Counted from the stretch's first letter, positions 34,825 through 62,427 are shown. The stretch: DNA of 64,000 nucleotides from Neoechinorhynchus agilis (GCA_051530055.1 CM121342.1:1026797-1090796); one strand, 5' to 3'. The notes: a model not told the origin generated them from the sequence alone. Program-made: numbers and translations.

Positions 34825-35633
34825 ATGGTCGATCAAATCAATGATATTTCCGAGGAAGACTTTGAAGATAAAGCAGCAATTAATGACTTTGTCTACGAGT
34901 CAATAATGAGAGAGAAGGAAGTTGATAGGGCGAAGTTTGCAAGTCATTGGATGCGGGATGAAGAGAATCTCGATAAGCGATGCATGAGAGATTTGGTTTA
35001 GCACGTGTTGAATTTCTTTTCAAAAACATTGTTCTTGAAATATTCTCATGCATCTGCTGTACATGGACTACAGCGGAAATCAAAAGTGATATTAGAAAGC
35101 AATTTCTTGAGGCTGCTCGTACGAACGATCTCGTTAAGATCAAGGAATTATTAAAGAAGACGGATAAACCAGAAGATCTCTTAAGTGCAACCGATGATCA
35201 AGGCTATAGCTCCCTTCATCGAGCAGCGAGTGAAGACTCCATTTTAGTTGCGGAGTATCTAATCGATAAAATGAAAGATAGACTGGATGATCGGACAAAT
35301 GATGGCTGGACTCCTTTGCATTGTGCCAGTATTTGGAACCACGCTGAGATCGTTAGCATGCTACTAAATGCTGGGGCCGACGTTAATGCACTAACCAATG
35401 GTCATTTATCAGCTTTTCATCTAGCATGTAATCAATCTGACAATATAGAGGTTATTTCTTTACTGTTAATGCATCCATTATTGAAGACGAACAATAAAAG
35501 TAACGCTGGTGATACTGGTAAAGACTTGGGAATTAGGCATACTCAACATGGCGATCTTTTCGATGAAATATTTGATGATTCGTTGTATATTTCAATGTTA
35601 AATGTAGAAGACGAAGAAAATCTGTGTGATTAA
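34825..35633 (+). CDS. ANKRD49: Ankyrin repeat protein, ANKRD49-like; join(34825..34974,35061..35633), 240 aa
   Basis: Acidic N-terminal exon with KFASHW (58-codon ORF, below the track cutoff); ankyrin repeats GYSSLHRAA, GWTPLHCAS, HLSAFHLAC; removing 86 nt joins the frames. Confidence 0.75.
34975..35060 (+). other. T|A...T|A hairpin intervening sequence (86 nt)
   Basis: GAT|AAGC...GCTGT|ACA; perfect 11 bp inverted repeat GATGCATGAGA/TCTCATGCATC; contains an in-frame TAG. Confidence 0.8.
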
Positions 35634-35889
35634 GCAAATGGAAGTATTAAATTTATAAAATGATGAACATTCCAAAATTGTGGGGAATTACTGACTCCGG
35701 ATTTTAAAGGACTTATCATCTAATTTTTTTTATAAAGCTGCGCCATAGGGCGACTTTTAATAATCCTGTACCGATTCAACAAGAAAGGCAGGAAATTAGA
35801 ACGCTTTTATTCTTTAATGATAGTTTGTTTATTATCTTGACTGGATTTTAGTTCTAAGCACATTTCTATTTCTCCCTTTAAATACTAGT

Positions 35890-37080
35890 GCTTGAGTGAG
35901 GAGGGAATCCGTCGATAAACTGAGAGAGATCAACGTCTCTGAAAAATGCAAAATCTTTACAATGGATATTGTTTCCCTCTATAACAATGTCTGCGTTGAG
36001 GGTGCCATAAGTGCGGCGACCCACACCCTTCCGGTTATTCAGGGAATCGATCCCAAAATGCACCTAAAGAATCTGCTTGAGTTGGCTTGCGTTGCAAGCT
36101 TCGAGTTCGACAAAAAGTATTATCTTCAAAAGTGGGGATGTAGCCATGGGCCCACCTATTGCCCCAGTTCAAGCTAATCTCTTCAGGGATCACTAGAAAA
36201 AAGCGCAATGGAATCATTTGCGATTAAACCGGTTATCAACAAAAGATACGTATATGATATATTCGTGATTTGGCTCGGTGACGAACAGACTGCTAATGAG
36301 TTCATGGAACATCACAGCCGCTAAAAAAATCGAATCAAATTAACTATGAATAGGTCCGATGAAAATGGAAGGTTACCGTTTCTAGATGTATTAATTCAAA
36401 AAAATCAAACACGGATTACTACATCGGTTTACAGAAAGCCGGCCCAAAAAATAATTATATACTTTGGAATAGTGCTCATTGTAAAAGCGCAAAAGTTGGT
36501 ATATTCAAAACTTTCTGCAGTGAGGAGTGCCTCGGTGACGAAATCCAACAGTTGAAACGATTTTTTTATCAAGTTGAGGAACCCTAAAGATGTTCTTGCT
36601 TCAGCGCGAGAGCACGTAAACCGTGCGAGGCGGTCAGCCGTTAAAATGGCAATTTTATTTTCGATTCTCCATGAAGATAGGAAACCTCACTTCTCGGAAA
36701 TACCAGGAAGTAGAAAAGAGGGCTGTATTCTGCAAAGTTTCTTGTAGTCAATGGAACAGCAATTACATAGGACAAACAGGCCGGAAACTGAAGACGAGAT
36801 TGGCGGTACGTAAGCGGTTCAAGACGCAAAAGGTGATATCGTCCAATGTCGCGCAGAACGAGGTTCCAACTGGCCACGTTTTCAATTGCGATCAAACATT
36901 GGTTTTAACAAGTCAACATAATAACTTTCTGCGCTTAATTAAAGAAGCTCTCTTAATCAAGGAAATAAAACGGATATGAACGATCAACGAACTTAAAAAC
37001 TACGCCTTCATGACGAACAAAATGTGACAATACAATGAGATATAGGCGCATGTAAGGGCAGAATAACCATTTTACCTATC
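35890..37080 (+). mobile_element. Degenerate Penelope-like element (RT plus GIY-YIG)
   Basis: IFTMDIVSLYNNV, RYVYDIF (YVDD-like), LPFLDVLI, CKVSCSQWNSNYIGQTGRKLKTRL. Confidence 0.88.
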
Positions 37081-37767
37081 GTTCTTTAGAACTAATGATG
37101 AAATCGGCGAGGTTCTAAGCGTATTTAACAAAAAATAATTTACCGGGTGGCGACCTAAACAATACTTCTAATCATATACCGCGGTACTCCTAACATATCG
37201 ACATTATTTAGAACCGCATTTTTCAGTTCTTCAATTTTAAAACTGTTCTTAGTTTTTCAGCACTGCAATTCTAACATCGCCTTCTTTTTTTGTAAATTTT
37301 TACCTAAGGCTAATAAATTGGTAAGAATATTTTATTTCGAATGTCACCGGGCGGTGTTGTGAAACTCATGATGCATAGTAACGGATGCTTGAATTTAAAA
37401 TGGTAGTCTACTCGTTTAATTATCCGCTTATCAACTACATAAAACAAGCTCTTAATAAGATTTTCGATCTGACGAGTTTTCACCACCTACATTTGAAAAG
37501 TATTAGTGATTCCAAAGTACTCGTCTGGGAAGTAATGTTCATTTCCTTAGGTGAACAATGCACTTGTGTACCGAAATTAAAAGTCATTGTTTTAGATATC
37601 CTCGAAATTTCAAAGCGCTCATTTTCTTTGATGAAAGCAAGGTTTATGTGCTCCTAAGAGCACCCGTACGTCTTCAGCATCAAAAGTATCTGAAAACTTT
37701 TAAAAATGAAAAAGTTAGGTTTTGCGTATCATCCGTCATGCTTTTAACTTTCTTAAATATTTTAGAT

Positions 37768-38121
37768 ATGGCGACGGCCTTGAACGTTACCCGCTACGTC
37801 CTTGCATTCATAACCGCGCCGTCTCAATCGTGTGCTGCTCAAATTGCCGAAAAACTTGTTACGGACAGATTAGCTGCCTGCGTGAACATCGTGCCAGGCG
37901 TTGAGAGTGTATACCATTGGGATGGAAAGATTGAGAAAAGTCAAGAGGTCTTAATGGTGGTAAAGACAAAGTCAGAAATGGCGGATAACCTGAGAGAAGT
38001 TGTCAATTCTCTACATCCCTATGACACATGCGAAATAATATTCTCTAACATTGACGATCGCCTGTCTGATCAAAAGTATTTGCGATGGATTGACGATTCC
38101 GTTCGACATTTAAACGAATAA
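37768..38121 (+). CDS. CUTA: CutA divalent cation tolerance protein, 117 aa, uninterrupted
   Basis: AFITAPS..IAEKLVTDRLAACVNIVPGVESVYHWDGKIEKSQEVLMVVKT..HPYD; start placed at ATG 37768 after TTTTAG. Confidence 0.92.
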   Translation: MATALNVTRYVLAFITAPSQSCAAQIAEKLVTDRLAACVNIVPGVESVYHWDGKIEKSQEVLMVVKTKSEMADNLREVVNSLHPYDTCEIIFSNIDDRLSDQKYLRWIDDSVRHLNE

Positions 38122-38171
38122 AAATTGGGTTTTTTTTAAAAACAAAACGATATGTACACGCAATTTCACAA

Positions 38172-38528
38172 TCATCTTCTCCATAAACGAGAAGACCGTA
38201 ATCGTCTAAATGCTTTGGTATAGATATTGGGCCTTTCGAAGTCTTGTTCGTAGAGCATCATTGCTCCTGTGTAAACGAGTGGCGGAAAGTTAACTTTCCC
38301 ATGTTGTCCGAGAAGAAGTTCATTTTTCTCGTTTAAATTAATTGAATCTTTCCGAAAGAGCATATTATATCGCGGCTTTAAGATTGATTCCTGGAGTATT
38401 CTCTCTTTAGTCACGCGATCAGGTATCGGGGGCGCGTAGTATTTCACTGAACGGTACTGCTTAAATGAACCATTGAATAAAATAGGTGCATTTGGTATAA
38501 GATTCCGTTTTCCTACATATCGGAACAT
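38172..38528 (-). CDS. Hypothetical basic protein, 118 aa
   Basis: ORF lies tail-to-tail with CutA, 50 bp apart; AG|ATG start context; family not recognised. Confidence 0.5.
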   Translation of the reverse strand: MFRYVGKRNLIPNAPILFNGSFKQYRSVKYYAPPIPDRVTKERILQESILKPRYNMLFRKDSINLNEKNELLLGQHGKVNFPPLVYTGAMMLYEQDFERPNIYTKAFRRLRSSRLWRR

Positions 38529-38959
38529 CTCGATTATTTGAATTTTCCTGGAGTATGAAGATGAGAGCTGAACAACGAATGCTTGAAGTACGATCGCTCT
38601 TGGGGGTAGTAGTAAAAAAGTTCAAGACCGTGACTATGACCAAACGTAGGACGGTGTCAAAGTTCAGAACTGGAAAATTTTACTGTCTGGTCAAACTGTG
38701 AAATTATCCTGGCTGATTCGCTGAGTACTACTGTGTTTATATAAAAATATATTGGCTTCGCTCTTGTGTTGAGTGCCTTTCATGGTTTGAAACTCGCAGT
38801 TTCAGGCGTTTTAATAACTTTTTTTGCGAAAAGTGATGCCGTTTTCACCCTCCGACTCTAAGTGCCGTTAAAAACGACTTAGAAAGTGTTATGCTGTAAG
38901 CAAAGTAAGTCATAATTTCACCACGTTGTAGATATTATCGGTCGTTTTTGACATTTGCT

Positions 38960-39520
38960 TCATTCACCCAACCTCAGTCCCCACCAGAACGGACCATACA
39001 ACCCGACCGAATTTGCCCACACGAAAAGACTTCCTCCGGCCGGATTTGCCCATAAGAACGCGCTCCCCCTACCGGATATTCCCACCTGAACGGACTCCCC
39101 GCGACAGAATAGTCCCACCAGAACGGAATTCCCTCGACCGGATGTTCCCACCCGAACGTACTTCCCCCGACCGGATTTGCCCACCCGAACGGACATTCCT
39201 TTGCCGAATAGTCCACCACAACGGACTCCCCGCGACCGAATAGTCCCACCTGAACGGACTCCACCGATCGGATATTCCCACCTGAACGGATTTTCCCCGA
39301 AAGGATGGATATTCCCGCCAGAACGGACATTCCTTTGAAGAATAGTCCCACCAAAACGGACTGCTCGGACCGGATTTGCACACCTGAACGGACTCCACCG
39401 ATCGGATATTCCCACCTGAACGGATTTTCCCCGACCGGATAGATATTCCCACCCGAACGGACTCCATCGACCGGATATTCTCACCTGAACGGATTTTCCA
39501 CGACCGGATTTGCCCACCCA
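38960..39520. repeat. GC-rich minisatellite array of ~20 bp variant units
   Basis: Recurrent GGATATTCCCACCTGAACGGA / CCGGATTTGCCC / GAATAGTCCCACC units; related pieces at ~2270 and ~63090. Confidence 0.85.
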
Positions 39521-39845
39521 AAGGGACTTACAATTGAATTATGATTGAAGATATAATACGGACCGTCATGCCAAGGTTTACTTCTAAATTTTTTTGTGAG
39601 TGTTTTGAACGAATTTCGATAACAAGCTATAGAAAAAATACTCCCGAAAATAGGTCGACGCGCTCCAAATTGTCTTCATCAAGGAAGCAAAAAAAATCGT
39701 AAATTGATAAGACACGTCGCGACTACAGAATGCGTCGTTTTTAAAAGTTAAACGTGTGGACGGAATAAAAACAAACGAAGTCATCAATTCATGACGAAGA
39801 GACTTATCTCGGCGCACTACTGCATCCGGAATTAGGCTCAAATTT

Positions 39846-40660
39846 GAAACTTAATCGAGTGAATACCGTTGAACCATTGGGACGCCATGGTCTCGTCTGT
39901 CGGCAATCTGGCGGAAGGTACTCACGACCCGCCAAAGTGAACGAAATTCTTAGTCGTGCCCTGAATACTGTGAATTCGCCCAACCTCCTAGAGCCGGGCA
40001 ATCGCTGCCGACTCGATGGCTGTAGATCGGACGGTGTCACAGTATGGCAGTGACCTCTCGGAGACGCTCGAAGCCAGCAACATAAAATTCACCGAGTCTG
40101 TTCAAACAATGAGGCAAAGAAAGCGTCTACGGGATTTTTAGTGTCTGCGTCATTTGGTTACTTGAATTCGCAGAATGAGTACAAATACACTCACACCTCG
40201 CTTTACATAATAGATATGGTCCACGAAACTTGGCCACAAAGCTTCGTATAATCCCCATTCTGCTAATTTTCATAAATATTTAAAAATTTTCCTGAATAGT
40301 CTTTGGACGCATCGGCTTTTATCGTTTGTTGTTCTCCTCAATCTATTTAATCAACGGCTTTTCCGTTTTTCCGTAATCCCGTTTCGTGAGTTCTGGGTCG
40401 CCACGATCATGGACATGCTCGCAGCGAGCAACTTAAAGTTCGCCACTGTTAAATCAGGAGGAGCAGCAACTGCCGCTGAGGTCCGCAAAAAGGCCAAATA
40501 CAGAAAAGTGGGTCGAAATCATTATTTCTTTGACGTCGAGGCACTCGGGTCGTTTGGTACGTAAAGAATAAGTCTGGCTGTGCAACGGGGGAATGCTGCA
40601 TCCGTCCTTTCGACCATTGCATCAGGACTGTAGCTGAGTGATCCAGAGCGGTGGTGCCGT
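39846..40660 (+). mobile_element. Fragmented CRE-like REL element (39846-40095 and ~40395-40660)
   Basis: VEPLGRHGLVC knuckle and 3' end GCTGAGTGATCCAGAGCGG shared with the other copies. Confidence 0.8.
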
Positions 40661-41303
40661 GGGTGTTTTTCGAACTCTTTGCCTAAAAATCTTGCGTTTT
40701 TGTGAAAATTTTACAAATATTTTTTGTGTTCCGGAACTTTATTACAAATTATGAAAAGCGAATGTGCAGAGCCAAAATTAATTTATATGTTGAGAGAAAA
40801 ATAAAAAGGCGCTAGAATGTAAGACAACAATAAAATGAACGGTTATACGATTTCAAAAGGTCCAAACCATAAAAAGAGCAATGTCATGACTGATAGTGGA
40901 AAGGAAAAGATGTAATCCATAAAGTGGTGCCTAAACCAAAGGTTAAGAAGAGATCAAGTGTAAAACTGAATAAGATGAAAACGGCAAACAAATGAAAATC
41001 CTCGGATTGCCTTCAGTTGAGGCAACCCGATGGACCGCGGTCAGTGCAGCAATGCAAAGTTCTTAAAAGATTTTTGAGTCGATGAATCGCAATTTCTTTA
41101 TCAAAAGCACCCTCGTAATGGAGACAAAAATGATGTAGACGGTACTTCGATAATGAGCTTGCAAAATCACTTCTTGACAGATATGACTAGTTTCTTTGTG
41201 CATGATGTAAGGAAAACTTAAGACTGCTGGATGGAGTTGACGCGATGTACATTATCGATTCGCAATTAACGTTTCTTCTAAATTCCCGTTTGATTAAATA
41301 GTT

Positions 41304-41667
41304 TAATAACACATTTATTTGTTAATTAACAAAGAAAAGGATCCATGTATCATTGGGTCCTCATGAACACCGGAATTTGCAGGAAATTGTTTTCGATACT
41401 TCCTTAAGATTCATGCAGAGATTTGAAGAATTTTTGTTCTTAGGTACGTTTAATGTGGTCCGTTAGTTGGTTTTAGTTTATTTTGACTTTGGTTGGTTAA
41501 TTGCTAGTTATTGTTTTCCGTTCTCTCCTTCGAATCAATTCGTATTTGGAGGATTGAGCAGTAAAGGAGAAAGAGCGGAAGTAGGGATTTGTCGTATTAA
41601 CCCCTGCGCAAGATTTTCTGATGATATTATTTTTTAAATTTAATATTTTAACGGCCGTTTTGTTTCA
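41304..41667. repeat. Dispersed repeat, inverted partner at 52695-53057
   Basis: Near-identical reverse complement over ~360 bp. Confidence 0.9.
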
Positions 41668-42160: not shown

Positions 42161-42179
42161 GAAAAATTATAGTTCGAAC

Positions 42180-43465
42180 TCAACATTTTTGAATCCGACC
42201 GACGAATTCGCACACTTTTGTAACCATAGTTTTCATTACTTCTATTCCGTTAAGAAATTCTGCTTCAAAGCAGAACTCATCGGCCTCGTGCAATTTTACC
42301 GGCGTGTTGGCCATTGGCGTGAATCCTATACAGCAGATCCCAATCTTTCTCAGATACCTCGAATCTGTGCTTCCAAGGAACGCTGCGCTAAATATGGGTT
42401 TTTCTACGTGCAATCTGTTAATTACCAAGTTCTGCAATTCTTCTTTTAATTCCTTCGGTGAGTGATCGAATTCGGGTTCATCGATTTCTCCTACGATCTC
42501 GGCTTTTTCTTCCTCAATGACTTCAGTCGCTTTTTTAAGAACCTCGCAGTACCTCCATTGCGGGACACGGATATCGAACATTGCTTCCACTGAACTTGGA
42601 ATAATATTGCATTGAACACCGGCCTGGACTTGTGTGCAATTGACCGTTGTCCATCGACCGAGATCTACGCGAGAAGAACCAATATCGTCGTTGGCGACAA
42701 CTCCCTCGTATGGAGTTCTAAGTTCTGTCAGTTTTGCATACAATCGCTGGAATCGCTCCATTGCGTAGTACGGAAAAGCAGGCAGCGACCCGTGTCCACC
42801 AATTGAATTCAATCGAACTTTAAGCCAAAGGGGCAACCGCTCTTCGGTATACAATGCGTAAGCATCATTTGGAGACGGTATACCTTCGTCTAGGGCGATG
42901 CATACGTTCAAATCCAAAAACTCCTTCAAGGACTGAGATTTCCTAAGCCTCATGCAAATAGAACCCTAGAGATAAAAAATCCAGTCGTTATTTTGCAGAG
43001 AACCCGCATTCCATTGGAACCTCCGACTTCTTCGTCCGGTACGAAACTCAAGTGCAGATCACATGGCAGTTTTACACCGACTTGCTTCAATCGTCGTACA
43101 GCTTCAATTTGTTGAATAGCAACCGCCTTCATATCCTGAGTACCTCTTCCAAAGAGCTTACCGTCTTCCGAACGATAAAGCACAAATGGATCAGTTGACC
43201 ATTGCTGACCTTCGACAGGGACCACGTCCATGTGGGAGTTCAGTAGAACTGATCTATTCGGCGAATAATCGCTCTTCCAACTCACAATAACAGCGGGATA
43301 CTGCTTAGGTTCCAGGTACAAAACACGAGAATCAAGACCGATTTCTCGGGCATACTCACAAATGAACGACGCAGCAAGATCGTATTCCGCATTCGGATTA
43401 ACCGTCCTTATTGAAATATACTCCGATAGCTTTTGAATGGCGATGCGGTCCCATTCACTCTTCAT
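42180..43465 (-). CDS. ACY1: Aminoacylase-1; join complement(42180..42927,42990..43465), 407 aa
   Basis: LLNSHMDVVP, GRGTQDMK, FVPDEEVGG, ALDEG, GHGS, TDSRYLR, LHEADE. Confidence 0.92.
42928..42989 (-). other. T|A...T|G hairpin intervening sequence (62 nt)
   Basis: AAT|AACGACTG...CAGTCCTT|GAAG; stems GACTG/CAGTC and GATTT/AAATC; ends are in register with the outer stem. Confidence 0.75.
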
Positions 43466-43619
43466 ATGGATCTGAAAAACAATGGATACTAAACGTCAAT
43501 CTTTAAAAGGTTTTGAAACAATCAAAACCACACAGTGTGCTGTACATGTTGCCCAACACCTTTAGCGTCCACCAAAAAATGTTTCGTTTAATACCCTCTA
43601 TTGCTGTTCGTCCTTCTTC

Positions 43620-45222
43620 TCAAGGTTTCCAAACGTAAGAAGTGGAATAAACGAACCCTGCCTTAGCACAAAGATTGTCAGCAGCCTTAAGAGACCGCAC
43701 TCCGAATGGGTACTTGACGGGTTCCATTTGATCGGCAATCTCGAGTAAAGGTGTAAACAACTTCCAAGCTTCGTGCAACTCATCCGACCTAACAAAATTC
43801 GTCTGAACACCTGAGAAAACGTCCATTATAAGACGTTCGTATGCTCCTGGAAGATTTAGCTTTTTGTACCGCACTCTGTATGTAAGATCGAGTTCACTTG
43901 TCTCTGGACAGAACTCACGACCTGGTTTTTTGTTATTGATTTTCATATAAATCGCCTCGTCCGGTTGTACTCTAATGACCAATTCATTTCTATTCAGACT
44001 TTCACTCATGTTAGATTGAGTAAACAGGTCAGTGGTAAGCGAATCTCTAAATTGAATCCTAATCTCGGTTTTACGCTCATTTAGAGCTTTTCCACATTTC
44101 ACCATAAACGGAACATTGTCCCATCGTTCGTTCTTTATATAAAAAACAATACACGCGAACGTTGCCGTTCGTGAATTATCAGAGACTTGTGGATCGTCCG
44201 TATAAGAAAATGCAGCATCCCTGAACTGGTCTTTTAAATTATCATTCTTTACATATTGACCAACGACAATGTCTTCCTTTTTAACTGGCAAAATCTCTCG
44301 TATAACTCGCGTCTTGGCATCTCGGATGTCATCCGCCGAAAAACTGGCAGGTTTGTCCATTGCAACGAGACAAAGAATCTGAAGAAGATGATTTTGCATG
44401 ACATCTCTAACGATGCCATATTTGTCAAAATATCCTCCTCGACCATAAGTACCAATATCTTCTTTAAAATTGATGACGACATTAGATATGGAGTTTCGGT
44501 CCCATACATTTGAGAATATTCGATTGGCGAATCGAAGAATCAGAAGACTCTGAACCATCTCTTTTCCCAGAAAATGATCAATCCTATAAATTTCCTCTTC
44601 ATTGAGGAACTTCCGAACGGATACGTCGAGCAAGTCTGAGCTCGTCAAATCATGTCCAAACGGTTTTTCAATAATCATTCGCATACATCCTGGTTTTTGT
44701 GGACGCAGATGATGACTGCAAAGTTCGCAAACACTTTGAAAAACGGAAGGAGGAGTAGCGAGGTAAAATATTCGATCACATGAGTTGTTAGTGCAACGGC
44801 TCTTTACTCGACCATAAGTAGAGATTCGTTGTCGTAGAACGTGGAGCATCCAGGATTTTCCGGAACGATTTAAAGTCATCAGCATTATCGTACCGACCAC
44901 GGACGTATTTGTTCCGAGTCAAGAACAACTCGAAGTTCGCAGTATCATCTCGTTCTTCATCCGGAATAAAGGATGATATTTTATCATGGAGTTGTTCGTC
45001 AGACATGTCAGACCGAGCATATCCGAAGAACGTAGTCGAACTCGGAATAAACTTGTCACGAAATAAAAGCCACAGAGTAGGGTAGATCTTTTTGTGGGCG
45101 AGGTCCCCTGATGCACCGAAAACGATGAACTGATGGGTATCGTATTTACAAGTGCGAGTCATCATATCTTCCCTGATAGCTGCCATGGCTTCATCTCCGG
45201 TTTCACTTCGATCGTCGGGCAT
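43620..45222 (-). CDS. G6PD: Glucose-6-phosphate 1-dehydrogenase; join complement(43620..44789,44836..45222), 518 aa
   Basis: GASGDLA, RIFYLATPP, IIEKPFG, RIDHFLGK, DVMQNHL, RNELVIRVQP, AYERLI. Confidence 0.97.
44790..44835 (-). other. T|A...T|A hairpin intervening sequence (46 nt)
   Basis: TCT|ACGACAACG...CGTTGCACT|AAC; 14 of 20 in-register pairs; CTA direct repeat at the ends. Confidence 0.65.
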
Positions 45223-47158
45223 CTGAAATCAAGGTGCAATTATTCACTTCCAAAAATGTATTATTGCGTTTAGCTCAAAAAAAAGAAGCGAAATTAATGC
45301 TAACTTTGATGGGAATTTGTAAATAAGAGTCCGTTTGGATGTTCGAGAAAAAACGAATTTCAAGGAAAAAGAGTTTTAAAATTAAGGGTCATATTTAAAA
45401 AACCACAGCATTTCGATGCTTAAGCTTCGAATAAAAAGAAGATACAAAGAAAGGAAGAAGGGATCTCTCCCTGTCTAGTAACAAAGAATGGAAAAAAATA
45501 CGATTTGAACTAATATAGTAGAGCTTTTATCGCACTAAATTGAATTTGACAGTTGGTTGAACGCATCCAAGTTTTAAAAGAGGACTCTAACCTCCTCACT
45601 CTATTTCAAATGTATCTAAAGATCTAGATGCAAACGAGATTTGACGCAATAAAACGGAAACTGCATTTCTAAGTGGGAATAATCGAAAAAGTCCCGTTTA
45701 GCGTTTCCTTATTCCGATGTGAGATTAAGAATGGACCGCATATCATCGAATATTGCCACCAAGGAAAAAGATATAAAAGCCTAAAAGATATAGACATCGC
45801 TATTCCCATTGCAATTTCTTCGGAATGTCGCAGACTGGATTCTCCATAGGAGTCTGCGCATACAAACAAAATAGCGACGAAAGTTTGGGAAAAGTGAGAG
45901 ATCTGTGTAATTACATTGCGGGTAAAAAATAAAAGAAGATCGGCGGATTGCGATTCCATATCGCTAAAATTTAAAAAAGAGATTACTTGAACGAAAGTAA
46001 GACTTTAGGTCGTCGATTAAAACGATCGGAAAAATCGATCGATTTAAATTTAAAAACGCACTTATGGAATACTGAACAAACAAAAGAAAAATTAACAACG
46101 TGAATTTTATTGATGCCACTTTAAACACATTTCTGAATTGTAAAGGCAGAATCATTCTTAAACATTTTATAGCATTTTGACCACTTAAGCCACAGAAACC
46201 CATCTACAGGAAAGAAAATTCGAATTTCGAATGTACTTTTAAATACATTTTCCCTTGAAAATGCACAGCAGTGACATTTAAAGAAGGTTCATCTCGCTTA
46301 TGTTTTATTTGTGTTGTTTAAAACTTAACAGTTTTGGCGATTTTTAAAGCTCTTTTACTACGTTAATTTGTTGGTATAAAGTTTTGAGTTAAACATCGAT
46401 CAATTTCGAATTACTCATCGGTAAACTGCGAAAATAGCTTTCCATTCATTTATCCCCAGAATCGACGCAATTGGACATTTCTGTCCTAAATTCGTTCATT
46501 ACACCCGCAAGTATAACATAAAATATTTATTTTAAGGCTTTAAGCTTGGCCCAAAATTATGAGGTTGTAGAATTTTGTCGAAATTTGACCAACGCTAATC
46601 TCGATTTTTTTTACTTGTTGCCCAATCTGCGATTTTTAGTCGACTGTTTAGTCTATTCTTTAGAATACTCAACAATAAAAACCAAGTATTTGGAGTCAAA
46701 TTTTTGATAAAAGATTGAACAAATATTCTTCCTTTGTTCTTCAAATCTTTTTAAAATGCGATGTCATTAAATTTTCTGTGAATTTTGGTTGGTGTACGTT
46801 GGTTTTTTATTTGTTTGGATAGTCTTAAGAACTATTATAAGAGAGCGGCAACGTTCAATGTAAGAACCGTCTATTTCGGTACACTATTTGATGACTACTG
46901 GGTGATTGATTATTTTCAAATACTATTTGGAGAAAAAAACAACGTTGAACTTACCTTTTTAAATGTGGACGAGATCTTTCTCTTGATTTTATAGACAAAC
47001 TCCGTCTTGAGCATTCCGTCTCTTTTTTTCTTTGAATGACAAAAGATCTTTCGTCTGAATTCATAAAGTGAGTTCGGTACGCGTGATTCAACACCGGCTC
47101 ACCCGTTCTTGTGTTCGCACGCAACATTTATTCGGTCAAAACGATTCGACACATTTTC

Positions 47159-48960
47159 TCACCATCTTCTATTTCGTCTACGGCGATCGTAATAATGGTC
47201 ATCATCCGGTCCGTTCCATCCACTATCGTAATACCGACGACCACTTCTACCGCCACGGCGATTTTCGAACCATTCACGCCGGGACATTTTGGGAGCCGCA
47301 TCGTATTGAATAGTGCTAAATTTAGTCGTGTTACGGGAATTGGGTCTTCGTTTCCTAGACATCTCCCACTCGAGACGTGGGGGAGGCGTTATGACTCGAT
47401 CAGTTCGCCGTCTCCACGATGGCCATAAGCTCGAATGCATCTCGGTCAAAGGACTGTGAAAAAAGTCCTTTATGGCCTTTTGAATATTACTCAAATGGTT
47501 CCGAGTCGCCTTGTTTCCGACTGGAGAAGGCGAACGATGTGTAGATTCGATTTGCTTCATGTAATGCTGAGTAGCCTGACCTAGAAATTGGAGCTTAATC
47601 TTAAAAAGCTTGAACGTATCGCGGTCCAGTTCGTCGGTAATGAAAACGATTCTCTCATTGCAAGACCAGTGGAACGCTAGTAACGCTGCTTCGAGCATTG
47701 ATAAATCGAAGTCGGGATCGTCTTGGAAACTCACTGCATTGGACGTAGTTCAATGATTCTCTTTTCCTTTTCAAGTTCACCAAAGAACAAAAAGAATCAC
47801 TGCATAGTTTTGGACGTAGAAGGCTTTGATTCGTCTTCTTCTTCATTGTCTTGTTTACTTTCTTTAAGTTCATCAGGTTCAATTAAATAAGCATTGACAA
47901 TGTCGAACAGCAATTGTTGTCGTTCTTGTGTGAGATGTTCTTTAGCATTATCATAAGTAGGCGTCATATCGACTAAATCGCGCATGATTTCAATAGATTC
48001 GGCATTGGTGACACCGCTGTCTTTTCGTTTCTTCGCGTCCAATACTTTCGGACAGCCGTATTGGAACACGAAATCGGCGAATTTGTTCGAATGGACGTTT
48101 TTTGAGAAGAGTTTAAGGCCGCGAGTAAGGCATTTGAGTACTTTTCGGACCATAGCCACATCTCCTTGATGTTCAAAAGGGAGTCCAGCGTGTCTGCTAA
48201 GAATATCGACAAGTTCCTTCCGCCCTACCAACGTCTGCATAATCGGATACCGACCCATTAACTCGAAAAGATCAAAAAAGGTTTGATCGTCCCGGGATGG
48301 AACCCGATGTATTGAATCGCGGATTAGAGGCAACACAAGAGTCTGATTCGCAGGAACTTCCTCAGCATGAGCTTCCACTACCTTGGATTTAAGAAAGTTT
48401 AGAATAGGAACGTTATAGTTCGGGATTTCTTTAAAGAGACGTCGAAGAACCTGTTCTTGGTTCACGGTCATCAAGGCCAAAATCGCCTTTTGAACCAATT
48501 TACTCTCCACGTCATCTAATGAGTTAAATTCGGGAATAACAATATCTAATGAACGGTCAAGGAGATCAACGTTCACAACCATTCCCGGGAGGTCATGAAG
48601 CGCTTGTCGGCGAATACTTGTGTTCTTATCTCCACACAAACTTGCGACGGCTTCAAACGCCTCTCGAGCGTGAGATGGAAACTGGCGATGAAAACGAAAA
48701 ATAAGCTGACTTGCCAATTGACGCTCCTGATCAACTTCCGATCGGGAACTTTCTATCAGTTGAACGTACGCATTCTCACATTCAGGATTTGATGCGGCCG
48801 TCGCTAATTTCTGCTGAATTATAGAGGCTTGTTCGTAAAGGCTATCAATTGCTGGAGAACTTGGAGATCCACCGCCAATCACACTCTCGTCAGCAACAAC
48901 TTGATCCTTTTCTTCTGACGACATCGATTCCGGTACACTCTTTTTTCTCGCAAGTTGCAT
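47159..48960 (-). CDS. API5: Apoptosis inhibitor 5; join complement(47159..47746,47806..48960)
   Basis: LASQLIFRF..FP, LCGDKNTSIRRQALHDLP, LEAALLAFH, FKIKLQF, IKDFFHSP; RS/RD-rich tail. Confidence 0.88.
47747..47805 (-). other. T|A...T|A hairpin intervening sequence (59 nt)
   Basis: ACT|ATGCAGTGATTCT...AGAATCATTGAACT|ACG; 10 bp stem CAGTGATTCT/AGAATCATTG; AACTA direct repeat. Confidence 0.6.
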
Positions 48961-50545: not shown

Positions 50546-51476
50546 ATGGAAAAAATATACCGGCTTCCATTAAGTAGATTTCTACACGTCTATGGAAAAG
50601 ATGCAGCATCCATCCTTCAGTCTAAATCGTTGGTTCCGAATCGCGTGGGACGATTATTTGGAACTTTGGTTATAATCTGACAAATGATATCACCAAACTT
50701 GATCTTAAAGCGAATTCACATCAGTATTCTTTAATGTTGACATCAACAGGAAACGTCAGCTTCGACATGTTCATCCACAGTCTTTCACAGGGCGACGGCT
50801 ATGTAGTTGAAGTGTTGGGTAAGAACGTCGAACATTTTAAAGGAGCACTCGAGTCAAAGCGATTCCGGAAAGAGTTGAAAGTTGAACACTTGCCTCAATT
50901 TCGTACACTATGGTCACCATATTTTCAAGAGTCATTTTGGGCCGACGTTAGACTTTCTCAACTTGGATAAAGGTGCTGCCTTGTTGGGTGCGTTTAGGCA
51001 AGACTGCTCCAAACAGACGAATATTGACTTCAGAGGAATGTGAGTTTGTTGGCACGGTGGTTTATAGGAAACATCTTTTTGAACACGGGGTCGCTGAGGG
51101 CAATGATCTCCTTCGGCGTGGTTCTGCTCTTACGCAGAACCTTCATTTATTGAACGCGTTCAGTGTTGAGAGAAAAGGGTGTTATTTGGGACAGGAGCAC
51201 GTTAATAGGATCATGAGTGGACTCTTGAAGATTAGGAAACGATTGACTCCGTTGTCGGTCGGAGAAATCGATGAAGATCTTGTTGATTGTGATTTAGTAA
51301 GCGGATTAAGTTATGTTGGTAAGGTTATCGCTCAACAGGGACATTACTGTTTGGCAATGGTTCAATGTGACGACTCAGGTAAAATTGTTAATAAGAACCT
51401 GCAAGTAATGACAAAAAGTTCAAAGATATTAAGAGCGAATGTCAAAGAACCTGATTGGTGGTTGACTGTGGGATGA
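50546..51476 (+). CDS. IBA57: IBA57/CAF17 Fe-S assembly transferase; join(50546..50623,50674..50968,51013..51476), ~278 aa
   Basis: LHVYGKDAASILQ, TNDI, DVRLSQLG, YRKHLFEHGVAEG, signature KGCYLGQE. Confidence 0.88.
50624..50673 (+). other. T|A...T|A hairpin intervening sequence (50 nt)
   Basis: TCT|AAATCG...GGTTAT|AAT; stem GTTCCGA..ATCG/CGAT..TTGGAAC; no AG dinucleotide between the conserved LQ and TND codons. Confidence 0.8.
50969..51012 (+). other. T|A...A|A hairpin intervening sequence (44 nt; 47 or 50 nt alternatives)
   Basis: GGA T|AAAGG...CTCCAA|AC AGA gives G-Y-R; stems TGCCT/AGGCA and GGTGC/GCTCC. Confidence 0.6.
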
Positions 51477-53057: not shown

Positions 53058-53069
53058 TTAACAGTTAAA

Positions 53070-53470: not shown

Positions 53471-53580
53471 GACTGAATTTGGTAAAATGACGTCACACCT
53501 AGCACTTTTTGTATGTTCTTCCGTATTTCTTCGTGCATCGTCGGCCTCCCGTCTTTTGTTCTTAAACTCATCTTGGAACA

Positions 53581-54060: not shown

Positions 54061-54176
54061 AAATGCCACCTAGAAAAAAGAATAAAGGACGTGTTTGGAA
54101 GTGCTTGTAGGTTGAACCCTTGCTGATTTTTTTAAAGGAAAATCCTGTGATCTAAATTTACATCACTCACGAATTC

Positions 54177-54914: not shown

Positions 54915-55057
54915 ATTCGCGCTGAAGTGGGTGGGCTATTTCGGTTGGGTAGGAACTAATAAAAGTCTTTAGGGTAGCTGTGACCTAAATTTGGTGTTTC
55001 AAAATGATTGACACGGATGTTTCTCAACGATTAAAGGGAGACCGGAACAAGCTTTTA

Positions 55058-55540: not shown

Positions 55541-56239
55541 AATGATTTTTTTGAAGTCTGGCCGGCCGGTAACTTTTATTCCAAGGAAAAATATCGACCG
55601 TGAAGAAAGTCAAACATAGATACTGAATATTTAAATATATTAACTGAATTTTTGTGTCCTCAAAGCTACTTTATTATTTTTATTTTTGATAACGGAAAGA
55701 AAACTTAAGAATATTTCGGAAAGTACAGATTTTGGTTAAACTAATTGAACACAAATACGCCCTACGATGTGGCGATACTGCGACTTCAACGATTTTAAAT
55801 CATGCTCACCGAATCACACACACAATCGGATTCGACAAGACCGATGTCCTCTGCAAGGAACAGAGAAAATTCCATCGACTGATAAAAGAGTCGATATTTG
55901 TATTGAAATGGCCACCCTTCAAATACGTGCAGTTGGCCTAAATGCACCCAGGGAGGCTGGTCTTCGCCTGCGAGGTTGACGATCCCGGCTTCCCGAGTCA
56001 ATACGAAAACAATCATGTCGCTTGTTTTGTGACAAATTCCTCTGTAATTTTTTAGATTCAATTGATAAAATGACCGATTCAATCGGTCGAAATATATTTG
56101 TCTTTAATGCGATCTCCCTCGGGTGTCCACAAGCGACCTAAATAACAACGAAAAACTCAAAATGTTGGGCCAGTTTCGTTCGAGATAAACACGCACCAAT
56201 CGAAATTTAAAAGCCAAGATTTAGCGGAAAAAATTGTCG

Positions 56240-58422
56240 CTAAAAAAAATGAGTTGTCCATCGCTGTATTAAAAGCTCTGCACTAATTCTTAACAATTTG
56301 CATGACCATGCCACTTCCATAAATTGAATTTCCCATTTTTCGACCGGGAAGGATTTCACAGATCGCATGAATCGCTTACCGCTAACACATTTTATGGTAC
56401 TGACGTTTTCTATGTCTTTTTTAAAGATAAGATGTATTTGACCATGCTTTTCAGAATCCGGAACCGCGTTCATGTGCTGCTCTAGAATGCACAATGAAGG
56501 GATGTTTACCTCGAATCCATTTTCAGGCCAACTATGGCCTTCTTCGCTCAATAAAATGTTTTCGCCATTTTCAAATCGAAAAACGTAACACGAATCAATT
56601 GCCGTGGACTCGTGCCTTCCTTGTTCCTTCAATTCAACTTTACGCTCTTCAAAATCTTCTTTTACAAAGACACTTTTCGAGTCATCATGAAATTTGTGCT
56701 TTGGACCGTTATGGGCCACAGGGACACAGAATGTGTCGCCTTCGCTTTCGTCTTGCAGTAAAATGCTGTGTTCACCCTCTAAAAGGAATCTGAAGCACTT
56801 TTCAGGGGCAAATGTGAGCGGATCTTGTTCAAGGGCTTCGTGTACACGTACCTCCTCGTTTTCCATAAAACTTACTAGCCAGCCATCTTCTCTAAGTAAA
56901 CGGCTTTCATCTCCTTCTAGAAGTATTCGATAACATTGATCGTCTCCAACAAACTCATCTTTACCATTGTCTTTTATGTAAGTGGCGGGTAGAGTTTCAT
57001 CCGGATTCTCGGGCACGGTTTTCATTTCACATTTTGAAAAACTTTGGCCTTGTTCCTTCAACAAAAGACTTTTCTCATCTTCAAAAATGAAACGATGGCA
57101 CTCGAGGTCACCATCGTCTTTATCAATGTCGATTTTAGGTGATGATGAACGAGACTGTTTTTCAGCCGGATTCTCGGACACGGTTTTCATTTCACATTTT
57201 GAAAAACTTTGGCCTTGTTCCTTCAACAAAAGACTTTTCTCATCTTCAAAAATGAAACGATGGCACTCGAGGTCACCATCGTCTTTATCAATGTCGATTT
57301 TAGGTGATGATGAACGAGACTGTTTTTCAGCCGGATTCTCGGACACGGTTTTCATTTCACATTTTGAAAAACTTTGGCCTTGTTCCTTCAACAAAAGACT
57401 TTTCTCATCTTCAAAAATGAAACGATGGCACTCGAGGTCACCATCGTCTTTATCAATGTCGATTTTAGGTGATGATGAACGAGACTGTTTTTCAGCCGGA
57501 TTCTCGGACACGGTTTTCATTTCACATTTTGAAAAACTTTGGCCTTGTTCCTTCAACAAAAGACTTTTCTCATCTTCAAAAATGAAACGATGGCACTCGA
57601 GGTCACCATCGTCTTTATCAATGTCGATTTTAGGTGATGATGAACGAGACTGTTTTTCAGCCGGATTCTCTGAGACTGTTTTTCAGCCGGACTCTCGGGT
57701 ACGGTTTTCATTTCACATTTTGAAAAACTTTGGCCTTGTTCCTTCAGCAAAAGACTTTTCTCATCTTCAAAAATGAAACGGTGGCACTCGAGGTCACCAT
57801 CGTCTTTATCAATGTCGATTTTAGGTGATGATGAATGAGACTGTTTTTCAGCCGGATTCTCCATGTCGGATTCATAATTCGTAGAGACGATATCGTTTTC
57901 GACTGTTGACTCCTTATGAATTTCTTCATCCTGAAAAGAGCTTTGGTCTTTTTCTCCCATCACCGTTTCAAATCTTAGATCACCATTTAGTTCATGGACG
58001 TCGCTTTCTTCGTCTTCTGTTGACTTTATTGAGAAGATTTCCTTTTCGAGTTTGACCATTGACCGTACTTCAAGGGAGGCCCGGTAACACCCGCATTTTC
58101 CCCTTTTTTCACCATCCTCGGCTAAGGTGGTTGGATTTTTAGGCCATATATCGATCAGAAATACACTTTCTTCTTTTTCTCGAGGAAAACATTCAGTAGG
58201 GATCACAACGACTTGCGATAAACTTAACGTGGAAGATTGTCTAGAACAACTAAACGTTTCCTCAAATACGACAACGTTGGAGGTTTTCCGTAAAATTGGA
58301 TGTCTAAGTGTAGCTTTAAGACTTTTAAAGTATTCAATAATTGGAAAACCTTGTGTGCGATTGACGTTGCAACAATAGATTTCGTATTCTTCAACATTAT
58401 TATGAAGTTTAAAAGTGCGCAT
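56240..58422 (-). CDS. Acidic repeat protein, split by a 26 bp duplication near 57661-57686
   Basis: ORFs 57553..58422 and 56240..57559 share the 55 aa repeat; removing 26 nt fuses them. Confidence 0.6.
57001..57862. repeat. 165 bp (55 codon) tandem repeat, about 5 units
   Basis: CCGGATTCTC recurs at 57001, 57166, 57331, 57496, 57661 and 57852. Confidence 0.95.
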
Positions 58423-58908
58423 TATTGAACATTGAACGTCAACGATATTTTTCGATGTCTTGGATTATTATCTTCGGTATGGGGGGATAGAGACTTTCTT
58501 TTTCTTAGTTATACCATCGCTCGGATTTAGATTCACTAATTTATTTCCCCGGTATTTCACCTCTCGGATTATTCCGACATTTAATCAGAGTTTATTATTA
58601 AAAAGGAATATTGAGCGTCTTTTAATAATAAAAAATGACAAACCGAATCAGAAGGGTGGCGAAACTACCAAAGGAAGGATATTTTTTCGATTTGAAAGGT
58701 GTTAAACTATTAGAAAAATTCTCATGAATGGTTCTTGAACATAATCTCTCAGTTAAGGATTTTCCTTTACTATTATTGTGGAACCTCGTCTCATCAGTCA
58801 TTATTAAAGTGTTTCGAGATAAAAATGAAAATTATAAAGCTGTTTTCGCAGTTTCATAATAATAAAGGAATCTTGAACGTGGGATTATGTTCAAAAACCA
58901 TTCAACAT

Positions 58909-59433
58909 TTACCATCCCGAATTATCTTCTTTAGTCCCTCTCTTCTTACTGAAATGTTCAATTAAGCGCATAAATCTCATTGTTTTAAATGGTTTCTTAT
59001 ATTCCATGACACGATACTTTGCATTTATGAACGTCTTTGTAACTGGCACCAAGTGATATTCTTTATACTTTAAACTTCCACGACGCATTTGTTGCCTGAT
59101 TGTCGTTATCGAAAGCGAGGAGACTGTAATGGGTGATTGATTAGCACAAGACCAAGTCGAAGGTATGACGTAGAGTTCGCTGATTTCAAGTTTAAATAGA
59201 TCGCCATTGCTGATATAACGCATCACCGACGAAGAAGAAGAAGATCGGTCAATGGATTCCTTATTTTTCACAAATGGATGCCGAGGACTCAAAGGTGAAT
59301 TATCGATACTTTTGGCCTGTTGCACCAGAGAAGTTGACTTTTTGGGCGCTTTTGTCTTGAACGGGCCAGTCATTTTGACCGATTTTAAAAACAAGTTCTC
59401 TTCAGAATACTTTTTAGTTTGTTGCCATGGCAA
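58909..59433 (-). CDS. Hypothetical basic protein, 174 aa, divergent from PRPF40A
   Basis: ATG-initiated ORF 175 bp from the PRPF40A start; family not recognised. Confidence 0.5.
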   Translation of the reverse strand: MPWQQTKKYSEENLFLKSVKMTGPFKTKAPKKSTSLVQQAKSIDNSPLSPRHPFVKNKESIDRSSSSSSVMRYISNGDLFKLEISELYVIPSTWSCANQSPITVSSLSITTIRQQMRRGSLKYKEYHLVPVTKTFINAKYRVMEYKKPFKTMRFMRLIEHFSKKRGTKEDNSGW

Positions 59434-59607
59434 CGCATTTTAAACACTTTCGGCGGTCACTTTTGAGTTTAACAACAAAAAGAGGTTTTCAATTTTTGTC
59501 AGGAAGCGTCCACTTGTTTTAATTGAGACGTAAACACATCCGTCATCAATCGGAAAGAACGTCTGTTCGTCGCAGTTTCCGCCTAGAGCTGTGTGCGTGT
59601 TGGGTCA

Positions 59608-62427
59608 ATGACGGAAAATGAAGTTAAATGGACGGCTCACAAATCTCCAGCTGATGGACGGACCTATTATTACAATAACGAAACGAACGAATCTCGTTGG
59701 GATAAACCGGACGAGCTTAAAAGTGAGCCGGACACGACGACGTGCCAGAGTGTTTGGCGAGAGCTTCGGTCTCGAGAAGGGAAAACGTATTATTTTAATA
59801 CACAAACTAAGGAAAGTCAATGGACTCGTCCTACGGAATGCATCGAAAAACAAGAAGATTCAAATAGTCATTATAGTCCGAAAACTCCTCCAACCTTGAA
59901 CGATGACATGAGTGCTCGTAAGAAGGCAATGGAGGGATTTAGAGCTCGCGTGACTGATGCCCATAGGGTTTTAGTCTTTAAGATGTTTGAACACAACCAA
60001 GTCGCCATTTTCAATGCTTAAATTAGTCCATATTCTGCGTCTTTATTTTATATCCGTTTTCTTCGATCAATCGATTAGCCATTTGTTAAAAAAAAGATGA
60101 AAGTTGACAATTTTACGCTGAAAAAAAATTCGTCGAGTCAACCCATAGATTAAATAAACTTTTTTTCCTGCATTCAATCCTTTAGTTTTCATTATATCCC
60201 TCATTCCGCGCAACTCCATTGGGCCGTTGTTATCACGCTTGCCGTGTTGCCCCGTTGAATAGCCACACTCAAGCGTTGGATGAGGTAGTTCCTTTGTCTG
60301 TGATCGCCGCTGGTTTTTATGAGTAGTCAGCCCATCTCCGCGCAAAATTTCTATGCCGACACTCCAAACGCCCCATTTGTCTCCACACTGAAAGGAAGGA
60401 ATAGGTGAGTGGTTTCGATTCAACGTCTTTATTTTATATCCGCTTTCTTCGATCAAACGGTTTGCCATTTGTTAAAAAAAGATGAAAGTTGACAACTTTA
60501 CGCTGAAAACAACAAAGTCACACTTGTAAGTTCCGCCAAGGATTCGTCGTCCGAGACGAAAATTCGTCGAGCAAACCATCATAGATTTTAATATAAAGCG
60601 GGGAAAACAAGTTATCGTCGTTCGTTCCCCTAATGGCCAATTTTACCGGATAATAACAAAACATCCCTGGACCTCATGAAAAGTCTTGTTTTATCTTCTT
60701 TTTTACTTTCCAGCACTTTAGATTAATGACCTTTGTCATGTTTGAACATTGAATTAAAAAAAGTGATTGAATCCGAAAATCCATTACTGCCCAGATCGGC
60801 CCACGCGTGCTATAGAGAGCTTTTAAGAGAAAAGAATGTTCCAAGTACGAGTAATTGGGATCAAGTTTATAAACTCGTCTCTGGAGATCCTCGATATGAT
60901 CTTCTGAGTACGGTGAGTGACCGTAAGCAAGCATTTAACGGATACAAAGTTCAAAAGCAAAAAGAAGAACGTGAACAAGAACGAATGCGGTTAAAGAAAG
61001 CTAAAGAAGACCTTGAGAATTTCCTTCAAGCCTGTGAATACATGAGTTCCAATATTGTGTACAAGAAAGCTCATCAGATGTTCGGACATTTACAAGTGTG
61101 GGTTAATGTGCCGGAACGTGAGAGACGCGAGCTTTTCGAGGACGTTGTGTTCTTTTTGGAGAAACGAGAAAAGGATGAAATTAGACAACTTCAGCGAAGT
61201 AATATGACGAATTTGAAGAAGATATTCGAGCATTTGAGTCGGGTTGGTCACGAAACAACATGGACGCAGGTACAAGAGTATTTGTTGGCATCGAAAGCGT
61301 TCAAATCGAATGCGAATCTTCAGAAGATGGATAAAGAAGACGCTTTGGTTGTGTTTGAGGATCATATTCGACAGTTGCAGATTCGACATGACGAAGATAT
61401 GGAGCGGTATCGTCGGTTGGTGTTCAGGAGTGAAAGAAAGAACCGAGAAGCGTTTCTTGATTTACTAGATGAACTTCGAGATGCGAAGAAGTTGACATGT
61501 CGAAGTATGTGGAGAGAAGTTTATCCCGTGTTTAGATCGGATGATCGATTTTTGAACATGGTTGGACAACCGGGAAGCACTCCATTGGACCTGTTTAAGT
61601 TTTACGTGGATGCATTAAAGACTCGGTATGATCAAGATCGTAGATTAATAAAATCTATATTAAGAGACGCGGAATTCGAAGTTCATCCAAAGAAGACGGA
61701 TTATGAGGATTTCGTGAGAGTTGTAAAAGATGACAAGAGGAGTGATAGGTTGGACGAGGACAACATTCCACTTGCGTTTGCTAGTTGTGTTCAACGAGCA
61801 ATTGAAGAAGAACGAGAACGTATTCGGGAGCAGCAAAGGAAACAACGTAGAGCGGAAACGTCTTTTCGGCGGCGATTGAGACATTTGAAGCTTAAGGATG
61901 ATAGTCAGTATGATGAATTCGAGAAGGAGATTGAAGAGTTCGAGGAAGCTGACATGTTTAATCGTGAAGAACGGGAGAAAATGTTTTGCGAAGTGCTTTT
62001 ATCTCTGAAGGAAGCTGAGACGTTGATGAGAAAAAGGAAGCAGCAGCAGAGTGGACGACAAGTTGAACAGTTATTACCCGCTCCATCTTCTTCATCGGCC
62101 GATGAAGAAGAGGAAGGCGAGGTGGCTCGAAGAAAGAGAAAGAAGGAAAAGAAAAGGAGGAAAAAGAGCACAAAGTCAAGGAAAAAGTCGAAGAAAAGGA
62201 GGAAAGTGAAGAGGAGAAAGTCAACAACCAGCTCGGCGGAAAGCACGAGCGAGGAATCGGATGAGTCGAGTGAATCCGAAGATCTTACGAGTTCGTCAGA
62301 TGAATATAATAGCTCGGAGCGAGATTCAGGCGATAAAAAGGGATCGACTGATAGTGAAACAGAGTCGGTGGACGAGGGAAAAAAGAAGAAGAAAAGTAAG
62401 AAGTCAAAGAAAGCGTCCAAAAAATGA
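59608..62427 (+). CDS. PRPF40A: Pre-mRNA processing factor 40 (WW and FF domains); join(59608..59940,60814..62427), 648 aa
   Basis: Two WW domains ([19 protein letters not shown]; W......GKTYYFN..SQWTRP); FF repeats [26 protein letters not shown]; K/S-rich tail. Confidence 0.95.
59941..60813 (+). other. T|A...T|A intervening sequence with terminal inverted repeats (873 nt)
   Basis: TTT|AGAGCTCGCGTG...CACGCGTGCTAT|AGA; 10 of 12 terminal positions pair; removal gives F-R-E-L-L-R-E-K. Confidence 0.8.

Follow-up and report, generated by a model that had tools for sequence, protein, structure and literature searches.

How do conserved genes that are broken by short inserts still encode intact proteins? 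The question is raised by a 64,000-nucleotide (nt) stretch of the genome of the acanthocephalan Neoechinorhynchus agilis (GCA_051530055.1 CM121342.1:1026797-1090796), hereafter the window, in which positions are counted from the first letter. The region from 34.8 to 62.4 kb is a compact gene cluster, and six of its genes, otherwise intron-free, are interrupted by seven inserts: an ANKRD49-like gene, ACY1, G6PD, API5, IBA57 (twice) and PRPF40A. A sequence-only reading of the window had proposed that these inserts (86, 62, 46, 59, 50, 44 and 873 nt, in that order) represent a new intron-like system cut at a common T↓A site (the arrow marks cuts and joints throughout), and had considered a fritillariid tunicate as a possible host. 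The host turned out to be an acanthocephalan, as the IBA57, G6PD and ACY1 pieces are 100% identical to proteins of N. agilis at NCBI. All seven inserts were reproduced with their coordinates and lengths, and Pfam agreed with the gene identities, ANKRD49 being taken as an ankyrin-repeat protein of that size.

Three inserts are cut from RNA and kept in DNA

Logan contigs of three RNA runs (X1, X2 and X3) and raw whole-genome shotgun (WGS) reads (X9) were placed on positions 42600-48599 of the window, a segment that contains the inserts of ACY1, G6PD and API5. The depth of the RNA runs was 200-800 in genes and approximately 0-3 in the intergenic part at 45.4-46.8 kb; because the intergenic depth was near zero, X1-X3 represent true RNA. 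Contigs from all three runs skipped exactly the predicted lengths, with joints at 42927>42990 in ACY1 (62 nt skipped, ambiguity of 1 nt), 44788>44835 in G6PD (46 nt, ambiguity of 3 nt) and 47745>47805 in API5 (59 nt, ambiguity of 5 nt). The coordinates proposed from the sequence fall within the allowed range of each joint. The joined products, of 407, 518 and 580 amino acids (aa), respectively, contain no stop codons, and both the G6PD_N and the API5 profiles continue over the joint (Table 1). In X1 and X3, bin depths equalled the contig depth multiplied by the fraction of non-insert bases, and therefore these runs hold no insert-retaining contig, i.e., retention is zero at the contig level. 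A minor 64-nt joint of ACY1 in X2 proved to be the same splice with one base change beside the junction, not a second site, and a 71-nt alternative for API5, prompted by a flanking duplication of 19-23 nt, was rejected because the RNA skips 59 nt instead.

The raw WGS reads covered the same three inserts at the normal depth of ~15x, with no joined read at any of the three sites, and carried a single-nucleotide polymorphism at position 42952, inside the ACY1 insert. The RNA contigs differed from the exons and untranslated regions (UTRs) of the window at 0-1 positions over more than 1 kb. As the inserts are present in the WGS reads and skipped in RNA, with no joined DNA, neither faulty assembly, nor an intact paralogue, nor bulk excision from DNA can account for the skips. 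The inserts of ACY1, G6PD and API5 were thus shown to be cut from RNA at an exact nucleotide and kept in DNA, which establishes for three of the seven the earlier proposal that removal takes place in RNA rather than DNA. Two objections raised along with that proposal, that the inserts might be missing from raw genomic reads or that intact paralogues might exist elsewhere, did not hold, as the genomic reads contain the inserts and include no insert-free copy at the three sites. Programmed translational bypass, as in T4 gene 60 or with the yeast mitochondrial byps, needs the insert in the mRNA, whereas the RNA contigs lack it. Protein-database searches matched, for N. agilis, only public genome models and no transcript-derived proteins.

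Shared anatomy of the inserts and predicted junctions

The inserts are bordered by direct repeats that read, in order, TA (ANKRD49-like), T (ACY1), CTA (G6PD), AACTA (API5), TAA (IBA57 insert 1), A (IBA57 insert 2) and TAGAG (PRPF40A). TA is found at both ends in five of the seven; the borders are TA/TG in ACY1 and TA/AA in IBA57 insert 2, so that a TA lies within or next to every one of the seven junctions. Over the three joints defined by RNA, the combined chance of repeats of at least 1, 3 and 5 nt is approximately 1e-4 (hand calculation with a quarter-per-base model). Terminal helices start 1-4 nt from each insert end. When compared with dinucleotide shuffles, five of the six short inserts show a better fold (z from -2.3 to -4.5), and they also surpass 97-99% of genomic segments of equal length, so that the claim that every insert folds back on itself stood for these five and failed for IBA57 insert 2. 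Evidence for selection on the RNA fold is suggestive: the sense fold is more stable than the antisense fold in five of the six short inserts, with a summed difference of -23.6 kcal/mol. This agrees in direction with the earlier claim of G-U pairs that form on the sense strand only, but the asymmetry is not significant (sign-flip p ~0.06).

Sequence comparison confirmed that the inserts share no mutual similarity, and no Rfam families or tRNAs were found in them. None can be read as a GT-AG intron in any allowed register, as had been claimed, with the qualification that a different canonical intron is formally possible in PRPF40A. More generally, the inserts do not display the features of canonical U2 introns (GT/GC and AG ends, a 5′ splice-site consensus and a polypyrimidine tract). 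The proposed T↓A rule is compatible with all seven cases and is the sole register common to them, although within the repeats the sequence allows more than one position of the cut. That the cut splits the TA in half is a matter of convention, dictated by ACY1 and IBA57 insert 2, the latter with a predicted junction on which the argument from a common register also leans. The next exon base is a purine in all seven, as proposed.

Across the window, TA-bounded foldbacks numbered 19 against 7.4 expected, and perfect short inverted repeats 72 against ~42 expected, both suggestive but weak. Small TA-bounded foldbacks with perfect terminal arms of 8-14 bp are also found outside the conserved genes studied, at 3817-3891, 27768-27842, 9756-9832 and 13068-13180.

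For the ANKRD49-like insert, both IBA57 inserts and the PRPF40A insert, removal from RNA is predicted from the reading frame, homology and shared anatomy. Joining would yield stop-free products of 240 (ANKRD49-like, with the start at 34825), 278 (IBA57) and 648 aa (PRPF40A); the lengths proposed earlier for the ANKRD49-like, ACY1 and G6PD proteins were reproduced. The starts of the ANKRD49-like and IBA57 genes adjoin TTTAG↓ATG and TGTAG↓ATG, like the RNA-verified 5′ end of G6PD at TTTCAG↓ATG. No in-frame GT/GC-AG solution exists for the ANKRD49-like insert or IBA57 insert 1. IBA57 insert 2 is the weakest of the seven cases; there, the insert can base-pair through its 3′ end with the upstream (5′) exon end. 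The divergent exon 2 of IBA57 matched no sequence in the PDB.

PRPF40A admits 63 formal in-frame GT/GC-AG alternatives, e.g., with a donor CTC↓GTAAGA at 59918, and its junction is therefore unproven. The 5-nt repeat and the pairing in register of 10 of the first 12 positions of the insert ends, which chance would rarely give, stand against these alternatives. The predicted junction, ...AMEGF↓RELLREK..., resembles what we take to be the start of the first FF domain of the human protein. The interior of this insert contains a direct repeat of ~110 nt and an open reading frame (ORF) without a Pfam match.

Table 1 Features of the interrupted genes and of canonical splicing in the window
Feature	Coordinates	Strand	Remarks
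ANKRD49-like exon 1, 50 codons	34825..34974	+	Start adjoins acceptor-like TTTAG↓ATG; opens a stop-free 240-aa product
ANKRD49-like insert, 86 nt	34975..35060	+	TA/TA repeat; 11-bp perfect stem near ends; minimum free energy -28.6, z -4.5; predicted junction
ANKRD49-like exon 2, ankyrin repeats	35061..35633	+	Pfam Ank, Ank_2
ACY1 exon 1	42990..43471	-	Peptidase_M20 profile 1-80; mRNA 5′ end 43471 at TTTTTCAG↓ acceptor with non-genomic leader
ACY1 insert, 62 nt	42928..42989	-	Sense T↓AACG...CCTT↓G, 1-nt ambiguity; RNA joint; z -2.4
ACY1 exon 2	42180..42927	-	Pfam M20_dimer
G6PD exon 1	44836..45222	-	G6PD_N profile 1-97; 5′ end at TTTCAG↓ATG acceptor with leader
G6PD insert, 46 nt	44790..44835	-	CTA/CTA repeat; RNA joint; z -2.5
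G6PD exon 2	43620..44789	-	G6PD_N profile 106-182 and G6PD_C
API5 exon 1	47806..48960	-	API5 profile 1-323
API5 insert, 59 nt	47747..47805	-	AACTA/AACTA repeat; RNA joint; z -4.2
API5 exon 2	47159..47746	-	API5 profile 322-502
IBA57 exon 1	50546..50623	+	Start adjoins TGTAG↓ATG
IBA57 insert 1, 50 nt	50624..50673	+	TAA/TAA repeat; hairpin, z -2.3; predicted
IBA57 exon 2, divergent	50674..50968	+	Reading frame
IBA57 insert 2, 44 nt	50969..51012	+	1-nt repeat (T↓A...A↓A); weak fold, z +0.4; predicted
IBA57 exon 3	51013..51476	+	Human IBA57/CAF17 structure 6QE4 residues 190-325; Pfam
PRPF40A exon 1	59608..59940	+	Two WW domains (Pfam)
PRPF40A insert, 873 nt	59941..60813	+	TAGAG/TAGAG repeat; AG...AT, last three bases TAT; predicted junction
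PRPF40A exon 2	60814..62427	+	FF domains (Pfam)
Canonical GT-AG splice AAG↓GTAAGT...TTTCAG↓ATG	45223..46954	-	API5 3′ UTR donor to G6PD acceptor; X1-X3
Canonical 48-nt GTGAGC...TTCAG intron, minor form	47055..47102	-	API5 3′ UTR; run X2 only

The public annotation of N. agilis mis-models all six interrupted genes. The ACY1 model (415 aa) includes 8 extra insert-derived residues, the G6PD model (494 aa) has lost 24 residues including the conserved IFYLATPP (IFYLA) motif, API5 is represented by two separate gene models, those of IBA57 and PRPF40A are cut short, and a 133-aa ORF within the 873-nt PRPF40A insert is annotated as a gene. Such mis-modelling may have inflated the published numbers of conserved genes "lost" from N. 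agilis.

Elsewhere in the window, two ORFs that encode a lineage-specific repeat protein (57553..58422 and 56240..57559) are put out of frame with each other by a 26-nt tandem duplication at approximately 57590-57645 (minus strand). The duplication may represent a genuine frameshift, an error or one more removable segment, in this case lacking a hairpin. Positions 1-34000 are mainly retroelement debris, with reverse-transcriptase ORFs and ORFs that look GIY-YIG-like (Penelope-like) by eye, and include a DHHC palmitoyltransferase gene at 17902-18588.

Canonical splicing at the locus and the candidate machinery

The same locus is also spliced conventionally. In all three runs, a donor of perfect consensus in the API5 3′ UTR (AAG↓GTAAGT, 46955) is joined to the leader acceptor of G6PD (45222), which provides an internal control for the use of standard signals. 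A canonical GTAAGT donor and TTTCAG acceptor are used 1-2 kb away from the inserts, and therefore a working spliceosome acts on this locus; the earlier statement that the genes have no GT-AG introns applies to the coding regions of ACY1, G6PD and API5 but not to the locus as a whole. In addition, RNA contigs of ACY1 and G6PD extend at their 5′ ends into non-genomic sequence, precisely at TTTTCAG↓ (43471-43472) and TTTCAG↓ATG (45222-45223), respectively, both on the minus strand. In the sense orientation these extensions end with ...AAAAAACTTGCAAACA and ...AAAAACTTACAAGCA, the ends at the two sites being also given as ...AAAAAACTTGCAAACA and ATATTTAAAAACTTACAAGCA, and they look like two spliced-leader variants. 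They provide direct evidence, at the transcript level, that an acanthocephalan trans-splices two variants of a spliced leader, of which we found no report in the searchable literature; no spliced-leader gene lies within the window. API5, G6PD and ACY1 are arranged head to tail on the minus strand (42180-48960) and one contig runs from the 3′ end of G6PD into ACY1, an operon-like organization. Two signal sets thus coexist at the locus, the canonical GTAAGT/TTTCAG signals and the TA-flanked inserts with paired ends.

What removes the inserts? With little more than even confidence, we lean towards regarding them as genuine unconventional introns, i.e., TA-site foldback or DNA-transposon-like insertions that are removed by a tolerant U2-type spliceosome helped by the terminal helix. 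Each insert would trace back to a small, unique element that inserted at or beside a TA and left self-complementary ends and a direct repeat of 1-5 nt, the anatomy of a foldback or small DNA transposon footprint. As shown for ACY1, G6PD and API5 and predicted for the other four, the insert stays in the genome, is transcribed and is then lost from the pre-mRNA along with one of the two repeat copies, which restores the frame to the nucleotide. The terminal helix may place the two ends only a few nucleotides apart, and a U2-type spliceosome that tolerates A...T/Y termini would cut and join there, the same spliceosome also splicing the GTAAGT...TTTCAG introns of these transcripts and adding their spliced leaders in trans. 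A tolerant U2 spliceosome is favoured because the introns of the larvacean Fritillaria borealis, the only animal precedent, have been shown to depend on the U2 spliceosome (PMC13326754).

The repeats and the pairing of the ends suggest an insertion origin at TA sites, by a foldback, a small DNA transposon or repair; the exact origin is made less certain by the lack of a repeated family in the window and by the 19-23 nt duplication that flanks the API5 insert. The earlier suggestion that the inserts derive from miniature inverted-repeat transposable elements (MITEs) agrees with their TA-containing repeats and terminal pairing, which are like those of small DNA transposons or foldbacks, but less readily with their being single within the window.

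Several observations weigh against the tolerant-spliceosome reading. No insert has a second copy within the window, which would be odd for MITEs. IBA57 insert 2 folds no better than shuffled sequences. The inserts bear no similarity to the 5′ splice-site consensus, and the 3′ end of the API5 insert is purine-rich, with 24% pyrimidine over the last 25 nt, yet this insert is removed efficiently. U1 and U2AF, if they act in the usual manner, would not recognize such ends. None of the seven conforms to the F. borealis signature, YAY↓AG...YAY↓, and RNA supports three of the seven junctions, the other four being predicted.

Because signals for the 5′ splice site and the polypyrimidine tract are lacking altogether, a non-spliceosomal route is a serious rival, albeit the less probable one. 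Here, a structure-guided endonuclease and ligase (or a euglenid-like machine) would read the terminal helix in RNA and cut both strands at its base, T↓A. The sole features common to the inserts are indeed the terminal helix, the TA step and the purine that opens the next exon, while canonical introns nearby have strong standard signals, so that two signal sets coexist as in Euglena (PMC12501133), and the more stable sense fold of five inserts points in the same direction. Against this route, the Euglena code N3-CDG...CH'G-N5-6↓R is found in no register, and reading the junctions and folds by eye revealed neither bulge-helix-bulge motifs nor IRE1-type CNG↓CNG loops at the cuts. The lack of a significant hairpin in IBA57 insert 2 and of significance in the sense/antisense asymmetry counts against it too, and the nearest animal precedent, F. 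borealis, is spliceosome-dependent. Tentatively, acanthocephalans may have acquired, by independent evolution, a second mRNA-splicing route that does not rely on GT-AG, with recognition of the end helix and a cut at its base, carried out either without the spliceosome or by a spliceosome without U1/U2AF recognition. If true, such a helix route would be the first in a bilaterian outside tunicates, and would explain the many core genes that appear "missing" or broken in acanthocephalan annotations.

The skips could also have arisen in vitro, by reverse transcriptase jumping the hairpin between the repeats, so that the mRNA would keep the inserts and the genes would be either bypassed by ribosomes or dead. 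All RNA evidence does derive from cDNA, and reverse transcriptase is classically prone to switch templates at hairpins that lie between short direct repeats. The skip is, however, essentially complete at the contig level in three independent libraries, the ACY1 repeat measures just 1 nt, and every skip yields a full-length conserved protein without indels from a single-copy core gene with no intact DNA copy, all of which makes this explanation highly improbable. Excision from DNA in transcribing nuclei, as with the internal eliminated sequences (IESs) of Paramecium, is still less probable: TA at both borders in five of the seven inserts and their ciliate-IES-like sizes would fit, but whole-animal WGS yielded no joined read at the three sites, and no 5′ end of an insert reads TAYAG, the boundary consensus of Paramecium IESs. 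That the copies are pseudogenes or mis-assemblies, with the RNA coming from intact copies elsewhere, has nothing in its favour except the frame-breaking inserts and is refuted, as nearly as can be, by the near-identity of RNA contigs to the window's exons and UTRs and by raw reads that cover the inserts at normal depth and include no insert-free copy.

Comparison with relatives and with known systems

The best non-self match of G6PD was that of another acanthocephalan, Pomphorhynchus laevis (61% identity), in which a single uninterrupted exon spans the position that holds the insert in N. agilis; the insert therefore represents a lineage-specific gain in N. agilis G6PD, as judged from the one gene compared. 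The P. laevis exon holds residues 3-561 (7633-9309 of the retrieved stretch, contig WNNJ02000320.1), and the annotated first exon, ~1.45 kb upstream, contributes two residues only and looks like a modelling artefact. For ACY1, a representative search for the P. laevis gene gave a transcript contig as the best match, with no genomic structure. No description of such introns in N. agilis or P. laevis, nor any acanthocephalan intron analysis, was found in the searchable literature.

The statement that the pattern matches no precedent exactly was borne out against the Fritillaria signature, the Euglena code and DNA-level excision of IESs. By inspection, the N. agilis cuts lie at the open base of a single hairpin, T↓A, and thereby differ from those of tRNA-endonuclease (bulge-helix-bulge) and IRE1-type splicing. 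Five of the seven inserts have TA at both borders, as do Paramecium IESs, and the keeping of one TA and the range of sizes are similar too. Paramecium IESs originate from Tc1/mariner-like insertions. However, IESs leave DNA, whereas the N. agilis inserts stay in DNA and are missing only from RNA, and their 5′ ends lack TAYAG. Introners, known from Micromonas, dinoflagellates and others (PMC11282704), likewise resemble transposon insertions: they bear inverted terminal repeats, are bordered by target-site duplications and are spliced out as introns. They are, however, multi-copy and bring or create GT/GC-AG sites, whereas the N. agilis inserts are unique in the window and devoid of canonical sites.

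The likeness to the nonconventional introns of euglenids (PMC12501133; PMC11282704) is more extensive. It includes pyrimidine↓purine borders other than GT-AG, ends paired near the splice sites, junction repeats resembling target-site duplications, a purine opening the downstream exon (7/7 here), the lack of a polypyrimidine tract, variable length and conventional introns alongside. Euglenids, however, are protists, and their code, i.e., CDG at +4..+6 pairing with CH'G, followed by 5-6 nt and an exon purine, is not found in any insert or register.

The only animal precedent is that of F. borealis, whose non-canonical introns are described as MITE-derived (Henriet et al. 2019, as presented in PMC11282704). 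These introns have inverted terminal repeats, are flanked by target-site duplications and depend on the U2 spliceosome for their removal (Soo et al. 2026, PMC13326754; PMC11282704). In both animals, introns other than GT-AG are precisely removed from RNA (as verified for three N. agilis inserts), inverted terminal repeats and a short direct repeat of the target-site-duplication type are found at the borders, and positions are lineage-specific in intron-poor genes, as found for G6PD by comparison with P. laevis. In the common register, the first intron base in N. agilis is A and the last T or C, and the PRPF40A insert reads AG...AT and ends with TAT, further points of likeness. N. agilis belongs, however, to another phylum (Acanthocephala, within Syndermata/Rotifera), and its repeat is built on TA rather than TAC or YAY. 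The RNA-verified introns do not begin with AG, those of ACY1 and API5 being AG/AY in no register, while G6PD can be read as TA/AC with CAC, and PRPF40A has TTT rather than YAY upstream. The canonical introns of N. agilis keep a strong GTAAGT/TTTCAG consensus, and a multi-copy element family was not seen for the inserts within the window.

Contrary to the sequence-only reading, the system is better regarded not as wholly new but as a variant, in another animal lineage, of a known kind of transposon-like non-canonical intron. Transposon-like introns outside the GT-AG rule, previously described in one tunicate lineage and a few protists, are now found, with RNA-verified cases, in a second animal lineage unrelated to tunicates. 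This fits a view in which insertions into coding sequence are tolerated by genomes that are poor in introns and relaxed in their splicing. With a second lineage, the drift of splice-site recognition, and its mechanism, become testable by comparison.

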